A stretch of DNA of 63,190 nucleotides, the filler included, from Pelomyxa schiedti (Eukaryota > Protista > Evosea): the NCBI GenBank assembly GCA_020536535.1. It is 8 parts of 8 records of this genome, joined end to end, with 100 filler letters (N's around TTAATTAATTAA, not from the genome) between each part and the next. Parts side by side here need not be neighbours in the genome. Positions count along the whole stretch, not along the records: positions 1 to 9,202 come from JAHLWZ010001297.1; 7 more parts are not named here. One strand, 5' to 3'. A model generated the notes under the pieces. It had not been told where the DNA came from. It made no database searches and was given only the letters and a program-made list of their open reading frames with translations. Of this stretch, positions 1-25,000 are shown one piece after another; the stretch's first letter is position 1, and the number at the start of each line of letters is the position of its first letter. The position numbers and the translations under genes are program-made.

Positions 1-121
1 GTGCAGGAGTGTCCAGTTTACATGCTGTTGGTGGTTGGTCAAACGTGAGTGGAAAATTTGGAGAATTCAAAGATGTGCTGGCTGTTTGTGTGTTCGTTAC
101 AGGTGCCGAATCCATCGAGGA
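1..121. repeat. Exact 121-bp copy of 1369-1489
   Basis: Direct sequence identity at offset 1368. A more diverged copy lies at ~1710-1850. Confidence 0.95.
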
Positions 122-1995
122 AGCAACCAGTGAAGAATCCATGGTTTTGCCTGTTTGGGAGAGTGCAAACATCCAGTGTTGTCCTCCCTGTGTGTTACAT
201 GTAGATGCGAAGAAGAAGCGAGGTGGGGTGACTCGGTGAAAACCCAAAGGAGGGAAAAAAGAAACCTGGGCTTGTTGGATAAATCAAAATGCACCCAGCT
301 CGGAAATCTTCTTTCGTCAATTGGAGTTCTGTTGTGGCCTCTGATCCACGTGTCTGCCAATTTCAGAAGATCAGCGTGGCTAATTATAAATAAAAGAACT
401 TGGCTTGTCACGTCACCTTCAAGGCGCTCTTCTCATTGGATTGGCGGCAAGCATCAAGAATGCCGATCGTCAGATCGGAGTATCTCTTCATTACATCAAT
501 CACAGTGCCAAGCATTGGTGCTTTGACATCCATGAGGTCATAACTGGTCTCTGTGAAAGCACTCTCGTCTTCTGTCATCAGCAGGAAGTTGTGTCCGTCC
601 ACCTGCCTTCCGTGTCCTGCAAAATAAAAGATGCTTGCAACCTAATACTATCTGTCATTCCCAAAATTTGACACAACAAGAGAAAGAGACCACCAAACCT
701 TGTTTCCTGCCCTCTTCTGCTTGATCAGTGCTTCTTTGAATTTTCGCAAGTTACTATTAAACACGTCGAGATTTGGTACATTCTTGTGGCATACCACTTC
801 AAATTGACATTTGTTCTTCAGGAACTGCATTGCCGTCAATGTAACAACAAAACAAAGTTTGTTTGGGAAAGCGGAAGAAACCTCACAAATGGAGTCTGCA
901 TCATTGATGGCGTTTTTGAGTGAACGCTCCCCATAAGATTGATTTCCAACAACAAATGCAAAGCACTTGTACCTCATGTCAGCACCGAAAAGGGGTTCTG
1001 CTCCCACTGAAAAAAAAAATAGTGAGAAAAAGCATAGAGAAAGCGGAGGATCTTGTCTCTTGCCAATTGCCAACCTATCATCGACTTGAGGGAACTGTGG
1101 CACGATTGCTCTTGACAGCTTCTTGCCAAATGCATTTTGACTTCCTCGACAATGAATTCTGCATCACCAAAAACGAGGCCAAGGTCACACAATTTCTGCA
1201 CGGAGCAATTGGCAAGTGTTCTTCCTCTCAGTTTATTCGCTCTGATGATTTTCAGGCAGTCGTCATCCACACCAACAGATTCAAGCCACAGACAAGTTTG
1301 GTCTGCATTGGCTGTTTGAATTTGAAAGGGTGTCTCTGTTTCAGCACTCGTGAGTGTTCCAGGTGTTTGTGCAGGAGTGTCCAGTTTACATGCTGTTGGT
1401 GGTTGGTCAAACGTGAGTGGAAAATTTGGAGAATTCAAAGATGTGCTGGCTGTTTGTGTGTTCGTTACAGGTGCCGAATCCATCGAGGAGTTTGGCAACG
1501 GCAACGGTTGGTGGTTGTCTTGAGGAATTAGAATGGTTTCAGGTTTTGGTGCAGTTGTTGGAGGCTTGCTTGGGAGTGACAGTCTCAGAGAATTCAAAGG
1601 AGATGTGGGGGCTGTGGGTGGTGTGTTTGTTGCAGGAGTTGGAATTTCTGAGGGACTTGTCTTTAATTGGTTATGAAGTGGAATTTCACTGGTGAGCGTT
1701 TCAGCTGTTTTTGCAGGAGTGTCCAGTTTACATGAGCCTATTAATGACCGTTGGGAAAACGGGAGTGATAAATTTAGAGAATCCAAAGACGTGGGGGCTG
1801 TTTGCGTGTTTTCTACAGGTGCCGAAGTCATTGAGGAGTTTGGCAACGGTTGTTGGTTGGCTTGTGGAATTTCTTCAATTGGTGGTGTTGCTGACATTGC
1901 CGATGGAGTCTGTGCAGAACTTATGGGTGATCTTTTGAAGTTACTCTCGAAGTATTCTTTGCCTGTGGCGAGAGCCATTGCATTCGGGTGTGACC
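39..1995 (-). CDS. P/T/S-rich linker + SAM domain + caspase-like peptidase C14 (p20 intact, p10 truncated by a duplication junction); probably the C-terminal part of the LRR gene
   Basis: SAM-like CLWLESVGVDDDCLKIIRANKLRGRTLANCSVQKLCDLGLVFGDAEFIVEEV splices in frame (intron 1074-1007) to YKCFAFVVGNQSY...LKNAINDADSI...VASIFYFAGHGRQVDGHNFLL...IGILDACR...TRG...GCILIYPTSPG...NHGFFTGCFL. His and Cys catalytic motifs are present. 5' boundary is uncertain. Confidence 0.85.
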
Positions 1996-2329
1996 CTTTT
2001 TGGGAGGGATGGAGGGAAGATTCAGTGGATGGTGGAATATGGATATTTCATAACTGAGGGGGCGATCATGTGAATCAAGAATCTCAATGGGAATTTCAAA
2101 AAGGTCATCAGGGAGAGTGTTTCCAGGGCCTCCTGAGACAAGCCAAATGTCTGCGTTCAGGGGGTATTTCGTGCCACCAACAGTGGGGCATGAAAATGCA
2201 GATGTTTGAGGTGGTTGCAGAAAGACCAGAAGAGAAGCACCCAAAGTGGGATGGATCACCCAGGTAAACCAAAAGAGCTGTATCTCTGTCGATGAAGGGG
2301 TCACCACACAATGGAGCAATGGCACATAC

Positions 2330-3960
2330 CTCCGAGACCCAGAGACGCGAGTGACTTGTTCAATTTGAGTGCTCTCGCAATGCTTGTTGCTCCCTCACTC
2401 CCAATTTCGTTGTCTAAGTGATGTTTGATTTGAAGAGGTCAACCACCATCTGAGAATTGAGAAACGCAAAGAACGATGGGAACACACATGATATATTCAG
2501 AGACACGAGTGACTTGTTCGATTCGAGTGCCCTCGCAATGCTTATCGCTCCTTCACTCCCAATTGTGTTGCCTGAGTGATGTTTGATTTGGAGAGTAAAC
2601 CATGACACGAGAATTGAGAGAGAGCACAAGAGGAACACACCTGATATATTCAGAGTCACGAGTGACTTGCTTGATTCAAGTGCCCTCGCAATAGTTGTTG
2701 CTCCCTCACTCCCAATTTTGTTGTCTGAGTGATGTTTGATTTGGAGAGTAAACCACCATTCGAGAATTGAGAGACACCACAACAGAATGATGGGAACACA
2801 CATGATATAATCAGAGACACAAGTGACTTGTTCGATTCGAGTGCTCTTGCAATGCTTGTTGCTCCCTCACTCCCAATTGTGTTGCCTGTGTGATGTTTGA
2901 TTTGGAGAGTAAACCACCATCCAAGAATTGAGAGACACCACAACGGAACGATGGGAACACACATAATATATTCAGAGACACGAGTGACTTGTTCGATTCG
3001 AGTGCCCTCGCAATGCTTATCGCTCCCTCACTTCCAATTTCGTTATCTGAGTGATGTTTGATTTGGAGAGTAAACCATGATACGATAATTGAGAGAGAGC
3101 ACAATGGAACGATGGGAACACACATGAAAGATTCAGAGACACGAGTGACTTGTTCGATTCGAGTGCTCTTGCAATATTTGTTGCTCCCTCACTTCCAATT
3201 TTGTTGCCTGAGTGATGTTTGATTACCCGAGAATCGAGAGAGCACAAGAGGAACACACACATGATATATCCAGAGACACGAGTGACTTGTTCGATTCGAG
3301 TGCCCTCGCAATGCTTGTTGCTCCCTCACTCCCAATTGTGTTGCCTGTGTGATGTTTGATTTGGAGAGTAAACCACAATCCGAGAATTGAGAGACACCAC
3401 AACGGAATGATGAGAACACACCTGATATATCCAGAGACACGAGTGACTTGTTCGATTCGAGTGCTCTTGCAATGTTTGTTGCTCCCTCACTTCCAATTGT
3501 GTTGTCTGAGTGATGTTTGATTTGGAGAGTAACAATGATACGAGAATTTAGAGAGAGCACAAGAGGAACACACGTGATATATTCAGAGACACGAGTGACT
3601 TGTTCGATTCGAGTGCCCTCACAATGCTTATCGCTCCCTCACTCCCAATTGTGTTGCCTGAGTGATGTTTGATTTGGAGAGTAAACCACAATCCGAGAAT
3701 TGAGAGACACCACAACGGAACGATGAGAACACACATGATATATTCAGAGACACGAGTGACTTGTTCGACTTGAGTGCCCTCGCAATGCTTATCGCTCCCT
3801 CACTTCCAATTCCGTGGTCTGAGTGACGTTTGATTTGGAGAGTAAACCATGACACGAGAATTGAGAGAGAGCACAATGGGAACACACATGAAAGATTCAG
3901 AGACACGAGTGACTTGTCCGATTCGAGTGCCCTCGCGATGCTTGTTGCTTCCGCGCTCCC
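2330..3960. repeat. Tandem array of ~137-161-bp exon+intron units (LRR cassettes)
   Basis: 11 near-identical copies of GAGTGACTTGTTCGATTCGAGTG... Introns are also homologous (GTGTGTTC...CAAATCAAACATCACTCAG). Confidence 0.97.
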
Positions 3961-4103
3961 AATTTCGAGGCCAGGCTCCGCACACACCCAATCTTGGTCA
4001 CTTTGTTCGAGACTGGTGCCCCGAGAGGATGATTGTTCGGCCCCCTTCGGGTCAGTTGGTGGGGGAAAAAAAAGGGGGGGAACCTAAGTCCCCGACGTAC
4101 CAT
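2330..4103 (-). CDS. N-terminal part of LRR receptor gene: ATG micro-exon, myristoylation motif MGAEQS, 11 RNI/NLRC3-type leucine-rich repeats (one 84-nt exon per repeat)
   Basis: ATG at 4103-4101 is followed by a GTACGT...CTGAC...AG intron (4100-4045), giving MGAEQSSSRG...EIGSAEATSIARALESDKSLVSLNLS. Ten 84-nt exons follow at 3818-3735, 3657-3574, 3505-3422, 3344-3261, 3207-3124, 3046-2963, 2885-2802, 2724-2641, 2571-2488 and 2413-2330, each encoding xNxIGSEGAxxIARALESNKSLVSLxxS. Confidence 0.9.
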
Positions 4104-4164: not shown

Positions 4165-7100
4165 TCATGACGACGAAGAGAGAAGCACGGAATTGGCTGA
4201 AACCACGAGATCTGTCGCCGTGAGGGAGGAATTGTGTGCCTTGAGTTGGAGTGTGAGCCACCTCCTGGATTTCAGTGCCAGCATCTCCCACTCATCCTGA
4301 TACTCGCAAAACTTCATATGCAGACTCGCCAGTGCTGTTGGTTTTTGGTTTGGAAAGGAAATGGTTGGTGGAAGAAGCAGGATTTGTGAAAGTGTTACCG
4401 ATTGCAGTATTCCAAAGGGATTGGCAGTTTTCCAGACCTCGAATTTCTGCGGGCATACTTTGGAGGATACGCTCTGATGTGCAACCTTTTCGTGCATTAG
4501 ATGGAGAGGAAATTGCCACATCAGGCCCACCAATGACTGAGGCTATTCCCGCAAGAGATTCAGGCCAAGAGCCATCAGAAGACTGAAGAAAGATCAACTT
4601 GTCAAGAGGTCTCACCTATATGTCATTCATGAATGGTCATTTTGGTGAGAACTGAAAAGGACAAATAAATAATATTCACCTGTGCCCCACTAGGAATATC
4701 TTGATCGATCCCTTTTGTAACGTCTGTTCTCCTTGATGAAGTTGTCGTTTGGGCACTTTGCTCCTGCTCTCTGCGTGCGTCTTTGGCTCCTTTTGTTCTT
4801 GCCATTGGTAATTCTGCTTCTTCTTCCTGGCGTCTGATTTCACCGACACAGCGTCTTTTAGAGAGTGTCTCTTCTCGGCGCTGCTTTCTCAGACATACTA
4901 CTGATTCCATCCGCAACCTTTGAAGTTCTCCCATTGCCCTTTGGCGACTTTCCTCCAGTCTCTGCCTTTCAATCTGCTTCTCTTGTTGCCGCTCCTCGCA
5001 CTGCATTCTTGTGCGTTCTTCTTGTCTTAACTTCTCCACTAGTTTTTCTCTCTCCATCCTGCGCTCTTCTTCCATTCTCCGCCTTTTTTCCTCTTCAATC
5101 CTCTCCCGTTCCAATTCTCGTTCCTCCCTCTCTGTTCTGGCGTTCTCTCTGCGTTGTCCAGTTCTTGCAGACGTTGTGGGCCGCACATTCAATGGAGAGG
5201 GGGGAGCAGATGGTACAGCAGCCTTGCTTATGCTCCCACTTGAAGGGGATAGAACACTTGAAAGTGATGTGGGAGACTAGATATGCCATAAGAGCCCCAC
5301 ATAATTAATACAGATTAGAGAGTGAACGGTTTTTTTGAGTTGAAAGAAGACTGAAAATACTGTGTGCTTCTCTGCTTTTGAGGCATACTCCACTGTGCGA
5401 AGTTGCATTGGCTCTGGGAGAAGATGAATCAGGGGACATTGAATCAACCATATGGTACCATTTACTGCTTCACTTCTGGTTTCCACACAAATAAACGTCG
5501 TGTACTTGCTTAGGAGCTGATATTTCAAAGCCAAGTCAACAATTTGTTGTTTATTCTCTGGGCTCTCTTCCAGGTCTCTACCAGATTGTTTAATTTTAAG
5601 CGTGCAGAGTCAATGGAAAGAATTCCTTTATTACTTGATGAGGGAGTGGAAGGCTAAGCGGTGTATTGATTTCCCAAGCTGAATTTTGGAGAGTGACAAC
5701 CTCACTTGTATTGGTTGTTATCAATCTGAGAAAAGTCTTACTGAAAAGGGAATGATATTTCTTGCTCATTCATGAACCCACGTACTCGCCCAGTGGATTC
5801 ACTTATATTATCAGTATTACCTAAAAACCCATACACTGGGGATTTTATTGGTCCGTTGTAAAAGAAAAGATCCAGGGAGTGATACCAAGTAGACGGTCAC
5901 CGTCAAACAGTGGAGGAACCAAAGCAGGAGATTGCTTTGCTGAGATAGTACCCCAATTAATTTCCACATTTCTAAGCACTGGCTGAAGTGCTCTCTTTAT
6001 TTGAGACATGACCTTGGACTCCAGTCTTGTTCCAGAGGAAATAAATTCTGCCTGAAATCTGTTAAGTCCCAAAAACGGCATCTGGTTACCTTGCCCCGTG
6101 TGGCCACAGCAAGACCTGTTAAATCTCACTATGAGGCTGTGGAATGCAATAGAAACAACCTGTAACAAGCTGTGGGCTGGCCTCAGCAGCTATCCCAAAG
6201 GTGAAAATCCTGGTCCCCCCTGGAAATCGTAACTTTTATTGGGTAACAAAGGGAAAAACCAGAATGACATTTCACGAAAGAAATTATGGCATTGGTGTCA
6301 CTAACATCCCCATCGGTCTTGGGGGTAACGTTGATAAAATTCAATTTCATGTGGCACTTACCAAAAAAAAGATTTGACGAGGTACATTGGGCTGAGGGTT
6401 GTGTAATAAAATATCCTGTAAAGGGGGAAGCACGTCAGTCCCTCCCAAATCAGCTCTCAGAGCGGTAATATGAGCTTTTGCAATAGTGAAGCTAATGTGC
6501 AGGTGAATAAGGAGACACGATAAAAGGTGGCAAACGATTGTTCATCGTAGGGAATACTTTCCCCAAATAACTTTTCGAAACGTGAACCAAACCCAACGAC
6601 TGATTGGAAGTCAAAGTGGGAAATGAATGAATGAGAACATACTGTTAAAGGTGCAGGTATTAGGAATGCTGCGCAAAAATAGTTGCATGGCATTTTTCAC
6701 TTGATTTATGCGTGTTCCAGACATACTTCCTGAACGGTCAACAAGGAAAATGAGCTCACAAGCAGTGTCTTGCTCAGTTTTTATGCTCGGGAAAAGAGAA
6801 ATCATGGCCACTTTGGATAAATCCTCATCCTGAAAACCTTAATCAAGATAGGAAGCTAGCACACCTACTTGCTCAATTGTTATGTACACAGAATCAGGAT
6901 TTACATTTGGCACAAGGATGAGCTCAAACCAGAATACCTCTGTGATCTGGAGAGATGGTAAAGGAATACTAATGCCTGAAGTGGCATACAGTTGAAAGTG
7001 TTGCTTTGATTGAAGACATAACCCCCTCAGTACTGCTAGAAATGGGATGTGAATGCTCAATAGAAGCAATTACTGCCGGTGCTTCAATGTCTCCAGAAAA

Positions 7101-22003: not shown

Positions 22004-25000
22004 TCAGCGTTTTTTCCTGGACATTGGGCGTGCATAAGCCTTTGGGTCGGGGTTGTACGGCAGCTTGATCTGCCACTCCTCCACGGCGGCGTCGCCCATT
22101 TTGCGTTTCACGCGCGCCGCGCCGATCTTGCGCAGGCGCTCTCGGCATTGCTATTTTTGGTGAGGTTGTTGTTGTTGTTGTTGTTGTTGTTTTCGTGGTT
22201 ATTGAGATTGCTATTAACTCAAAGAGAAGCTTCGATGTGTATGTATTTACGCTATTTATGATAAAACTAGGGAATTGGAAGGGGGGTATGTATTTTTATT
22301 ATTGCACATACGATGGGTGTTAGGAGTAGGTCTTGGGCTAGTTTATCAACATCTTCCTGGGGTAGCCTCCACTCGGTTGCATACAGTGCCAGAATGAACA
22401 CTGAGTGTAGTAATAGTGACACCTGTGCCGGTGTGCGGGAATATAGCTTCTCCTTGGTACCTGGTTGGCTGGGCCGCTGTGTGGCAAACCTATGTGTTGT
22501 GTTGGTACTTGGNNNNNNNNNNNNNNNNNNNNNNNNNNNNNNNNNNNNNNNNNNNNNNNNNNNNNNNNNNNNNNNNNNNNNNNNNNNNNNNNNNNNNNNN
22601 NNNNNNNNNNNNTACTTGGTACTGTATTTGAGGGTTGGAGTGGGAAAGTAAATTTTAACAAGATGTATCTTGCTTTTTCATTACAGTTGTTATTGGTACC
22701 TGGAAAGGAATGCAGAGTTTATAGAAGCCGGAACTAGAGTGCCTCTGTGTACGGACCGCTATGCTAAATTAAGGAAATCACTCAAAGAGTGAACAGTAGG
22801 GATAACGGTATAAAACAAAAACGGGAAGAAAAGGATACGCCCTTCTCACCGTCAATCATTTGGTGAGTACCATCGTGCCATCGAACCAAAAGGTTGATAT
22901 AAATGAGGAGTGCAATGGCGCGCATAATTTTCTCGTCAGTTTGTCTTGTAAGTGCCCACTCCACATGGTCAGGGAAGAAAAAGCTAGCTTTGCTGTGGAA
23001 CACAAGTTACTCCTGGGAATTAAGTAGGAAGGAAACACACGTAGCACTTATGATTTCTTTGGCTATGGCTACTTTCTTTTTAAGGATTCGTTTAGCCTCC
23101 AAGGTAGCGGCGGATTCAGCGGGGGACTTGGGCTTTGCCTTTGCCTTTGCTTTTGCCTTTGTTGCTCTGGGTTTTGGTTTGTTTGCTTCTGCCTCTACCC
23201 GAATCATCTGCTCAATGGCGCTCATCTCAACATCTGATGGCTTGCCCCCTTCTGGTTCTGGCTTGGCTGCTTCNNNNNNNNNNNNNNNNNNNNNNNNNNN
23301 NNNNNNNNNNNNNNNNNNNNNNNNNNNNNNNNNNNNNNNNNNNNNNNNNNNNNNNNNNNNNNNNNNNNNNNNNTTGCCTTTGTTGCTCTGGGTTTTGGTT
23401 TGTTTGCTTCTGCCTCTACCCGAATCATCTGCTCAATGGCGCTCATCTCAACATCTGATGGCTTGCCCCCTTCTGGTTCTGGCTTGGCTGCTTCGTCTTT
23501 GATTTCTTCTGCTTTGATTTCTCCTGCTTCTGTATTGGCTGGCTTCCCTTCACTTTCCTCCAATGTGGCTTCAGGTGCATTTAGCTTGTCCTGAAGCTCT
23601 TGGAAAAACTCCTTGGCGAAATCAAAGCAGAGAGTCCATTCATCCATGGGTATTACATCAAATAGTTTGAATAGCGAAGCAGGAGTTGTAGCATTGATGT
23701 CAAAGGGTGGCAAATCGGGGTGGGAGACTGCTTCAACTAAAACAGGTTCAGGAACTTTTCTCTCATCTTCGGCAATGTCGGCATTCGCCATCACGCTCCT
23801 ATTAAGTGTAAGGGTGTGTGCCTAGTGCCTCGTTAGTATGGAACAGAAAAATGAAAACGTTCTTACAATTTGAGCGGCCCTCCGAGAACCGAAGTTCTTA
23901 CTCAAGACTTCTCGTTTTTCATGGAAACTACGTTTTTCGTCCTTGACGTCACTTTCCTTGGAATCCCTAAGATTATGGTCCAGCCTCTGGATTGGGGGAA
24001 CAGCAACAACTCTCACCTGTAGAAATTCTTTTGGTAAGATGTTTGAAGGAAGTTGATTTTTACCTTATTTGTATACTTGTTGTACATTGCAATGGCATAA
24101 TTGCAGTGATATGACGTGGGAGCAGTTTCTGGATTTGGACGGTAGACACACTTAGCCGTGGTTGCCATGATAGGCATTTCCTTTTTTTCCAAATTAGCGG
24201 CTGACAGAAGAAAAGAACGGATACACTACACACATGGATCCCATCAGCGTCCCCCCTCTTGAACTGGAGCTCATCTTCATCGCCGACAAATACAGTTGGA
24301 TCAGGGGGAACAGAGAACTGCACCACAACAGGAGGGATTCCCACACTGCATACTTCCAGAGGCACTTCCTCCACGGACACAGGCTTCCGTTCCACCTGCT
24401 GTTCCTGTTCCTGTTCCTGCTCTTGCTCTTGCTCTTGCTCTTGCTCTTGCTCTTGCTCTTGCTCTTGCTCTTGCTCTTGCTCTTGCTCTTGCTCTTGCTC
24501 TTGCTCTTGCTCTTGCTCTTGCTCCTCTTGTTGTTCCTGTTGCTCCGGCTCTGGCTCTTCCGCTGCATATTCATGGGCGGGTTCCTCGGCTGGAATCGCC
24601 GTGCCCTGCTGTGGCACCCCTTCCTCCTCTTCATCTTGCTGGGCCCTCTCTTCGTTTTCCTCCACCGCCACCTCATTATCCTCCTGCTCAGCCGCGGCCA
24701 TAAACGACGACTCCCCCGCCTCACCCTCGGCTTGATCTCCCCCGGCTCCGCCCTCGGTTTCCGTTTCCGTTTCCTCCATCTCGGCCACTGCCACTGCAAC
24801 TGCAACTGTCGCCGGGGCCCCCTTGTGCGCCGCATTGCCCCCCTTCCCCGCCGAGCCTGGCGCCGGGGCCGTTGCCACTGGCACGGGGGCTCGTCCCCGC
24901 GTAGTGGCGGCCGTAGCCTTGGGTGCGGCGACCACCGGGGGGGCCGCTGCGGGCTTGGCCGCGGGGGCGGAGCCGCTGGCGCGGGGCTTTGGTTTCGGTG

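Follow-up and report, generated by a model that had tools for sequence, protein, structure and literature searches.

Gene structure and domain organization

The window analysed here (63,190 nucleotides, filler included) comes from Pelomyxa schiedti, an amoeba under whose name paralogous proteins are also deposited, and the minus strand of its first contig (C1297) carries a gene in which ten LRR exons, each exactly 84 nt long and phase 1-1, encode one 28-aa RI-class LRR apiece (Table 1). Every one of these exons is preceded by CAG/TAG and followed by GTGTGT/GTATGT, and an eleventh, partial LRR lies at the end of the 157-nt exon 2. Exon and intron together form units of 137-161 bp, repeated head-to-tail. 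The ten introns measure 69, 77, 68, 77, 53, 77, 77, 77, 69 and 74 nt and are homologous, with 94-97% identity within the 77-nt type and 94% within the 68/69-nt type; the remaining ones are a mosaic (84-90% identical to both types), a shortened intron and a diverged one. The codon of the residue just before N (x8) is split at each junction, and reads Y,C,H,G,C,Y,C,Y,G,Y along the array. An earlier, sequence-only reading of this DNA had placed in an amoeba an array of ten such 84-nt exons with homologous introns of 53-77 nt and these junction residues, all of which we re-found; its claim of two intron types plus mosaics is borne out by the intron identities.

RNA contigs show the last inter-LRR intron spliced (joint 2413-2488, run X4) and also support the downstream exons and the intron at 2286-2329. 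The remaining nine LRR introns are defined from sequence, eight of them being present in the deposited gene model as well. Joining the exons gives a stop-free open frame of 905 aa that agrees with the deposited protein of 977 aa, the main gap between the two being that the deposited model retains the first LRR intron (69 nt, in-frame and stop-free) as coding. Both 69-nt LRR introns (3819-3887 and 2572-2640) are multiples of three, the former also being stop-free, and family-wide 25 of 195 LRR introns are in-frame and stop-free.

The predicted protein consists, in order, of an MGxxxS start, 11 RI-class LRRs, a linker, a Pro/Thr-rich stretch, a SAM domain and a C14 protease. The start (MGAEQSS) is identical in the deposited model, and the paralogs P0004, P0002 and P0005 likewise begin MGxxxS/T. 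The SAM_2 match falls below the Pfam cut-off here (E 0.017) and reaches E 1e-14 in the relative P0008. In the C14 domain, which ends at the contig end about 50 aa short, both members of the predicted catalytic dyad are intact: His at 614-612 (AGHG) and Cys at 449-447 (DACR). The sequence-only reading described the LRR array correctly and omitted this C-terminal SAM and caspase-like protease tail, which is the best clue to function. Pfam assigns P0166, P0004 and P0002 no families other than LRR and C14, NACHT and NB-ARC both being absent; since NACHT is lacking, we rejected the GenBank names NLRC3/NOD3 of the paralogs, which are similarity labels only. Directly upstream lies a multi-exon VIT + VWA gene, recognised through weak exon-by-exon Pfam matches, with RNA support for an intron near 4335-4398.

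The LRR region, modelled with AlphaFold (pLDDT 97), resembles NOD2, NLRP3 and ribonuclease inhibitor (TM about 0.9). In this predicted model the LRR strand corresponds to x3-L-x5, and x8 falls in the following loop, three residues beyond the DSSP strand. In ribonuclease inhibitor, the loop after the strand is a ligand-contact region. The junction residue had been assigned to the ligand face; it does lie on the concave side, in the loop after the beta-strand rather than on the strand.

Table 1. Features of the LRR-SAM-C14 gene and its surroundings in the window
Feature	Position	Strand	Basis or remark
VIT + VWA gene (VWA5A-like) with charged coiled-coil stretch	8147-4292	-	directly upstream, same strand
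Start codon, 3-nt coding exon (inferred), then 56-nt phase-0 intron	4101..4103	-	GT..AG, CTGAC motif
Exon 2: putative N-myristoylation start (MGxxxS) and first, partial LRR	3888..4044	-	motif only
Ten-exon LRR array with homologous 53-77-nt introns between; x8 residue built at each splice junction	2330..3818	-	sequence; AlphaFold pLDDT 97
LRR exons 1-5	3818-3735, 3657-3574, 3505-3422, 3344-3261, 3207-3124	-	84 nt each
LRR exons 6-10	3046-2963, 2885-2802, 2724-2641, 2571-2488, 2413-2330	-	84 nt each
Last inter-LRR intron	2414..2487	-	spliced in RNA contigs
304-bp linker, identical to both ends of contig C1567	2004..2307	-	collapsed repeat in assembly graph
Post-LRR linker exon, family-specific, without Pfam match	2055..2285	-	sequence, RNA contigs
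Large exon: Pro/Thr/Ser-rich region, then SAM (about 1312-1136)	1075..1995	-	SAM_2 profile match
Caspase-like C14 domain (exons 1006-882, 824-699, 641-417, 353-266, 187-122)	122..1006	-	sequence, RNA contigs
Exact copy of 1369-1489	1..121	.	contig end; graph node, chimera or local duplication; shortens protease

Assembly context

The genome assembly (PMC8887013) was built from DNA of amplified single cells, the largest k being 121. The longest exact repeat is 69 nt within the array and 76 nt when C933, a paralogous contig, is included; because both are below the largest k, the order of units is unlikely to be a collapse artefact. Collapse was likewise considered as a source of the mosaic units and found unlikely here (longest repeat 69 nt), and is possible in the paralogs C995, C617 and C475, which hold exact repeats of 136-199 nt.

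The 304-bp linker is identical, intron included, between copies that are otherwise about 90% alike, which may reflect recent conversion, a tandem pair or a haplotype difference. Contig C1567 (L032), which carries a further LRR array, about 15 repeats long, together with a truncated tail, joins C1297 at both linker ends, and read contigs follow either path. The pairing of LRRs with the protease tail crosses this collapsed repeat, and either the C1297 or the C1567 array may carry the tail; C933 has an array like that of C1297 with a full protease tail. A crossover within the linker would swap sensor and tail. At the contig end, the 1-121 copy meets the protease exon over a short microhomology, as an artefact or a real truncation, and an RNA loose end at 118 continues into a normal protease end, possibly from a paralog.

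A caspase-like protease family in Pelomyxa

The protease exon has 27 genomic copies, about 10 of them directly downstream of LRR arrays (C1297, C933, C569, C644, C626, C721 with three, C495 and C863) and 17 others known via deposited proteins. His and Cys are invariant in 10 aligned copies, and PF00656 is matched at E 1e-20 in full-length paralogs. A sequence search with the protease against PDB gave no match, and only a fold search found relatives: for the predicted protease model of a complete paralog the best fold match is the MALT1 paracaspase (TM 0.71, E 6e-14), at an identity of about 16-17%. Acidic residues are conserved in NDA, as the D before AC and as the D after the YPTSPG loop; we take these to correspond to the MALT1 S1 pocket.

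Homology searches took single exons or retrieved proteins as queries. In a protein search of 1.84 billion representatives, the top 14 matches stand out by a wide margin in score, and Pelomyxa is the source of those that were looked up; the next-best protease relatives are bacterial-type caspase-like proteins (about 27% identity), the closest outside Pelomyxa being multi-domain caspase-like proteins found in metagenomes and in Microcystis. For the LRR part, the closest homologs belong to the NACHT-LRR proteins, and among the matches found the combination of LRR with C14 occurs in Pelomyxa only. The deposited proteins P0005-P0014 represent an expansion, specific to Pelomyxa, in which a caspase-like protease of bacterial appearance is combined with exchangeable N-terminal parts. 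The SAM-C14 module in this set is joined to Sel1, MORN, ankyrin+PARP regulatory, Ras and kinase/dynamin-like domains.

Variation and selection along the LRR exons

We assembled 220 exons of 84 nt and phase 1-1 from 20 arrays, with 6-17 exons per array. The most variable position is x8, with 19 amino acids and a within-array diversity of 0.86. Expressed as a pooled pairwise count over non-independent, recombining repeats and not on a tree, pN/pS across the 20 arrays is 1.9 at x8 (bootstrap over arrays, CI 1.62-2.35), 1.56 at x7, 1.3 for the concave set (CI 1.13-1.54), 0.57 in helix/loop and 0.21 in the core; the array here alone gives 2.6 at x8 and 0.26 in the helix. By itself pN is 0.049 in the helix and 0.287 at concave positions. 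The helix, earlier called nearly invariant, does show low variation, with T/I and S/N/T varying at two positions. In pairs of units with introns 3% apart, base 1 of the x8 codon is different in 54% of cases and base 2 in 39%, and the adjacent third-position base in 0%. These counts agree with the earlier claim that variation clusters on the concave side. Exposed positions vary more than helix and introns, and change at them is above both the synonymous and the intron level, several-fold so at x8. Positional hypermutation at exon ends was considered and is disfavoured, the base beside the variable one being invariant in close pairs.

The very young arrays C475 (L045) and C2132 (L046) share both end 121-mers; their exons are 3-5% apart and their introns up to 97% identical, and x8 is still widely varied (R,W,G,C,D,Y,N). 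P0171 (L051), from Eukaryota sp. TZLM1-RC, another anaerobic-type protist genome, is an intronless RCC1-like + LRR gene with near-identical repeats that vary almost solely at codon positions 1 and 2 of surface residues, which we read as a strong diversifying signal.

Recombination and turnover of units

A PHI-like recombination test is significant for the array here (p 0.005 and 0.002) and for most young arrays, not for old, diverged ones; pooled across arrays such tests give p 0.07-0.9 and no signal for exchange between genes. For 86 of the 220 exons the nearest exon lies in another array. In the closest paralog, C933, the flanks are 92-94% identical and the internal repeats are not colinear with the array here, being no closer in register than random (p 0.16-0.93); the terminal repeat alone matches in place. 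A dead, donor-less half LRR exon between two copies of an intron end in the C721 paralog (L033, about 22165-22315) is a direct footprint of unequal exchange. Judging by the sequences, the pattern is one of unequal crossing-over and conversion in a heritable array, and the earlier claim that units recombine and turn over finds support in the PHI-like values of 0.002-0.005 and in the non-colinearity with C933. We reject a plain recent tandem duplication because x8 is so variable (pN/pS 1.9), a recombination signal is present and the paralog is not colinear.

The split codon at the junction

It had been proposed that the splice junction itself writes the variable residue. Among 84 non-Pelomyxa LRR proteins, x8 is also the most variable position, with a diversity of 0.87, against 0.86-0.87 in Pelomyxa, and a similar residue spectrum; two of the 84 that were checked are intronless, and have x8 diversities of 0.85 and 0.88; in them, too, the excess of change falls on codon positions 1 and 2. 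The junction itself does not account for the diversity, since x8 is hypervariable to the same degree, and with the same spectrum, in intronless LRR genes. The prediction that codon halves are reassorted at the junction fared better: in the 14 younger arrays the halves of the split x8 codon are unlinked (z 1.1), and unsplit codons are linked (z 6.3 for x7; z 3.0 for x8 of the two intronless genes), a weak link between x8 halves persisting over all 20 arrays (z 2.3). This uncoupling suggests reassortment across the intron, and recurrent mutation could also yield it, because linkage is also lost 9 nt away within the exon. Plausibly, the intron adds hybrid codons at a site already under selection.

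Exon skipping and rearrangement

As the sequence-only reading had anticipated, skipping would keep the frame: computed from the exon ends, all 45 skip pairs of the array here are stop-free, and D and R would appear as new junction residues. Across arrays, 26 of 994 skip pairs create a stop, against 31 expected, and such pairs are present in 6 of 20 arrays; stop-making pairs are not depleted, and no selection for skip-compatibility is seen among the 994. The RNA and DNA evidence comprises four runs of short-read contigs from one study. No skipped junction occurs among the RNA joints listed in these short-read contigs, all of which connect ordinary neighbours. Within-array joints in two probable DNA runs were considered as rearrangements and rejected, the 124 and 71 multi-mapping contigs concerned pointing to paralogs or repeats. 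Opposite-strand, inverted or spare LRR exons are absent from 21 loci, which hold one dead half-exon, and no recombinase or mobile element was seen in the window.

Proposed function

We consider it probable that the gene belongs to a P. schiedti-specific family of intracellular, probably membrane-anchored LRR-linker-SAM-paracaspase-like C14 sensor-proteases, in which the LRR face is diversified by germline shuffling and selection. Unequal crossing-over and gene conversion in the heritable genome would drive the turnover of LRR exon+intron units, and would keep the frame because all exons are 84 nt long and phase 1-1. Diversifying selection would favour new concave-side residues, above all at x8, and crossovers in introns would also make hybrid x8 codons, as a bonus and not as the root cause. 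Binding of a ligand to the LRRs would lead to clustering through SAM, and clustering, going by MALT1 and SAM biology, to a dimerised, active Arg/Lys-directed protease; the output may be defence against, or control of, intracellular bacteria, archaea or viruses. According to PMC10579272, the host carries three prokaryotic symbionts. The observed anatomy, family expansion, catalytic dyad, recombination signal and nonsynonymous excess support a sensor-protease. Against it stand the SAM match below cut-off, the missing protease end, the counting-based pN/pS, the tail pairing across a collapsed repeat, and the use of RI-class LRRs in cytoskeletal and flagellar proteins as well.

The selected LRR diversity could instead serve a non-immune role, in prey or kin recognition or in cytoskeletal or signalling scaffolds, with the protease as one swappable tail. 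The 84-nt LRR exon type is also found in LRR-kinase and LRR-only genes (P0207, P0232, P0173), and the protease is also joined to Ras and kinase domains, both of which fit this role; the nonsynonymous excess on one face and the quick gain and loss of copies are better explained by conflict with fast-changing ligands than by a scaffold role, and we think the non-immune reading unlikely. Both of these traits are established for R genes, VLRs and ROCOs (PMC3341825). A recent, neutral tandem duplication whose variable positions are unconstrained would draw on the tolerance of LRR surface positions to change, and an assembly artefact on the amplified single-cell template; x8 change well above the synonymous and intron levels speaks against the former and exact repeats shorter than the largest k against the latter, leaving the pair highly improbable.

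Diversification could also take place within the lifetime of the cell, through regulated exon skipping or rearrangement among many nuclei that yields new repeat orders and junction residues. The frame compatibility of every exon, with 45 of 45 skip pairs here stop-free, and the unlinked x8 halves of the 14 young arrays beside linked unsplit codons favour such a combinatorial receptor, and there are precedents for the skipping of LRR exons both in the ROCOs of brown algae (PMC11378527) and in human NLRs (PMC6642158). Yet x8 is just as variable in intronless genes, stop-making skip pairs are undepleted, the RNA joints listed include no skipped one, and neither inverted or reserve LRR exons in the 21 loci nor a recombinase or mobile element in the window came to light, so that we regard lifetime diversification as quite unlikely. 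Very unlikely is that a multinucleate amoeba builds a lifetime receptor repertoire by skipping or rearrangement, with the most variable ligand-contact residue written at the junction, coupled directly to a paracaspase that polices symbionts or invaders.

Comparison with known systems

Brown algal LRR-ROCO genes, as in Ectocarpus (PMC3341825, PMC11378527), are likewise built from symmetric exons of equal length that each encode one LRR; they vary in repeat number, show positive selection on the concave face, lie in tandem clusters and have been proposed to act in immunity. The sequence-only reading had drawn this parallel, and the traits recur in Pelomyxa as equal-length symmetric exons, paralogs that differ in repeat number and order, and diversifying selection on the concave side by a counting method. 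The algal genes, however, have 72-nt phase-2 exons and a ROC-COR GTPase, whereas those of Pelomyxa have 84-nt phase-1 RI-class exons and a SAM-paracaspase tail, no ROC or COR domain being found in the protein by Pfam; inverted or intronic spare exons, common in the algae, are absent from the opposite strand in the 21 Pelomyxa loci. Tetrahymena LRR genes, as far as the available part of PMC6564038 describes them, share identical-length exons, a single intron phase, homologous introns and unequal crossing-over, and a 'junction amino acid' has already been named there; unlike Pelomyxa, they number in the thousands, have 90-bp phase-2 exons and are linked to a REP retrotransposon. In that part of PMC6564038 we found no report that the Tetrahymena junction residue is hypervariable or selected. 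NOD/NLRC genes (PMC6642158) and coral NLRC3-like NLRs share the 28-aa RI-class LRR, and in NOD/NLRC most genes have one LRR per exon, with a frame-preserving border near the beta-sheet. In contrast to NOD/NLRC, Pelomyxa has no NACHT/NB-ARC, an N-terminal LRR region and the effector protease in the same chain.

With MALT1 and the bacterial orthocaspases (clan CD, family C14) the protease shares the His-Cys dyad (AGHG/DACR) and a predicted caspase-haemoglobinase fold, but it lacks death and Ig domains and is joined to LRR and SAM. The VLRs of jawless fish arise somatically, as cassettes are inserted into a germline gene that is itself incomplete. VLRs resemble the Pelomyxa genes in having LRR modules with a variable concave face (also cited in PMC3341825), whereas the latter are complete, with no cassette library or somatic assembly found.

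We found no published description of these genes, and the genome paper (PMC8887013) mentions neither leucine nor caspase. Exon-per-repeat LRR shuffling is already known from Ectocarpus, Tetrahymena and NOD/NLRC; new here are the amoebozoan case, which adds to the independent origins of such shuffling, the split codon at the most variable site, which offers a clean test case for asking if diversification is faster when an intron interrupts a selected codon, and the LRR-SAM-paracaspase fusion, a single-chain counterpart, lacking NLRs, of the way animal inflammasomes pair a sensor with a caspase. For Pelomyxa, host to an obligate three-member prokaryotic consortium, the fast-evolving, exon-modular LRR-paracaspase family supplies named candidates for discriminating symbionts, prey and pathogens. 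By their sequence features, these genes appear to work like the brown algal ROCO and Tetrahymena arrays and to belong to none of the ROCO, Tetrahymena or NLR families.
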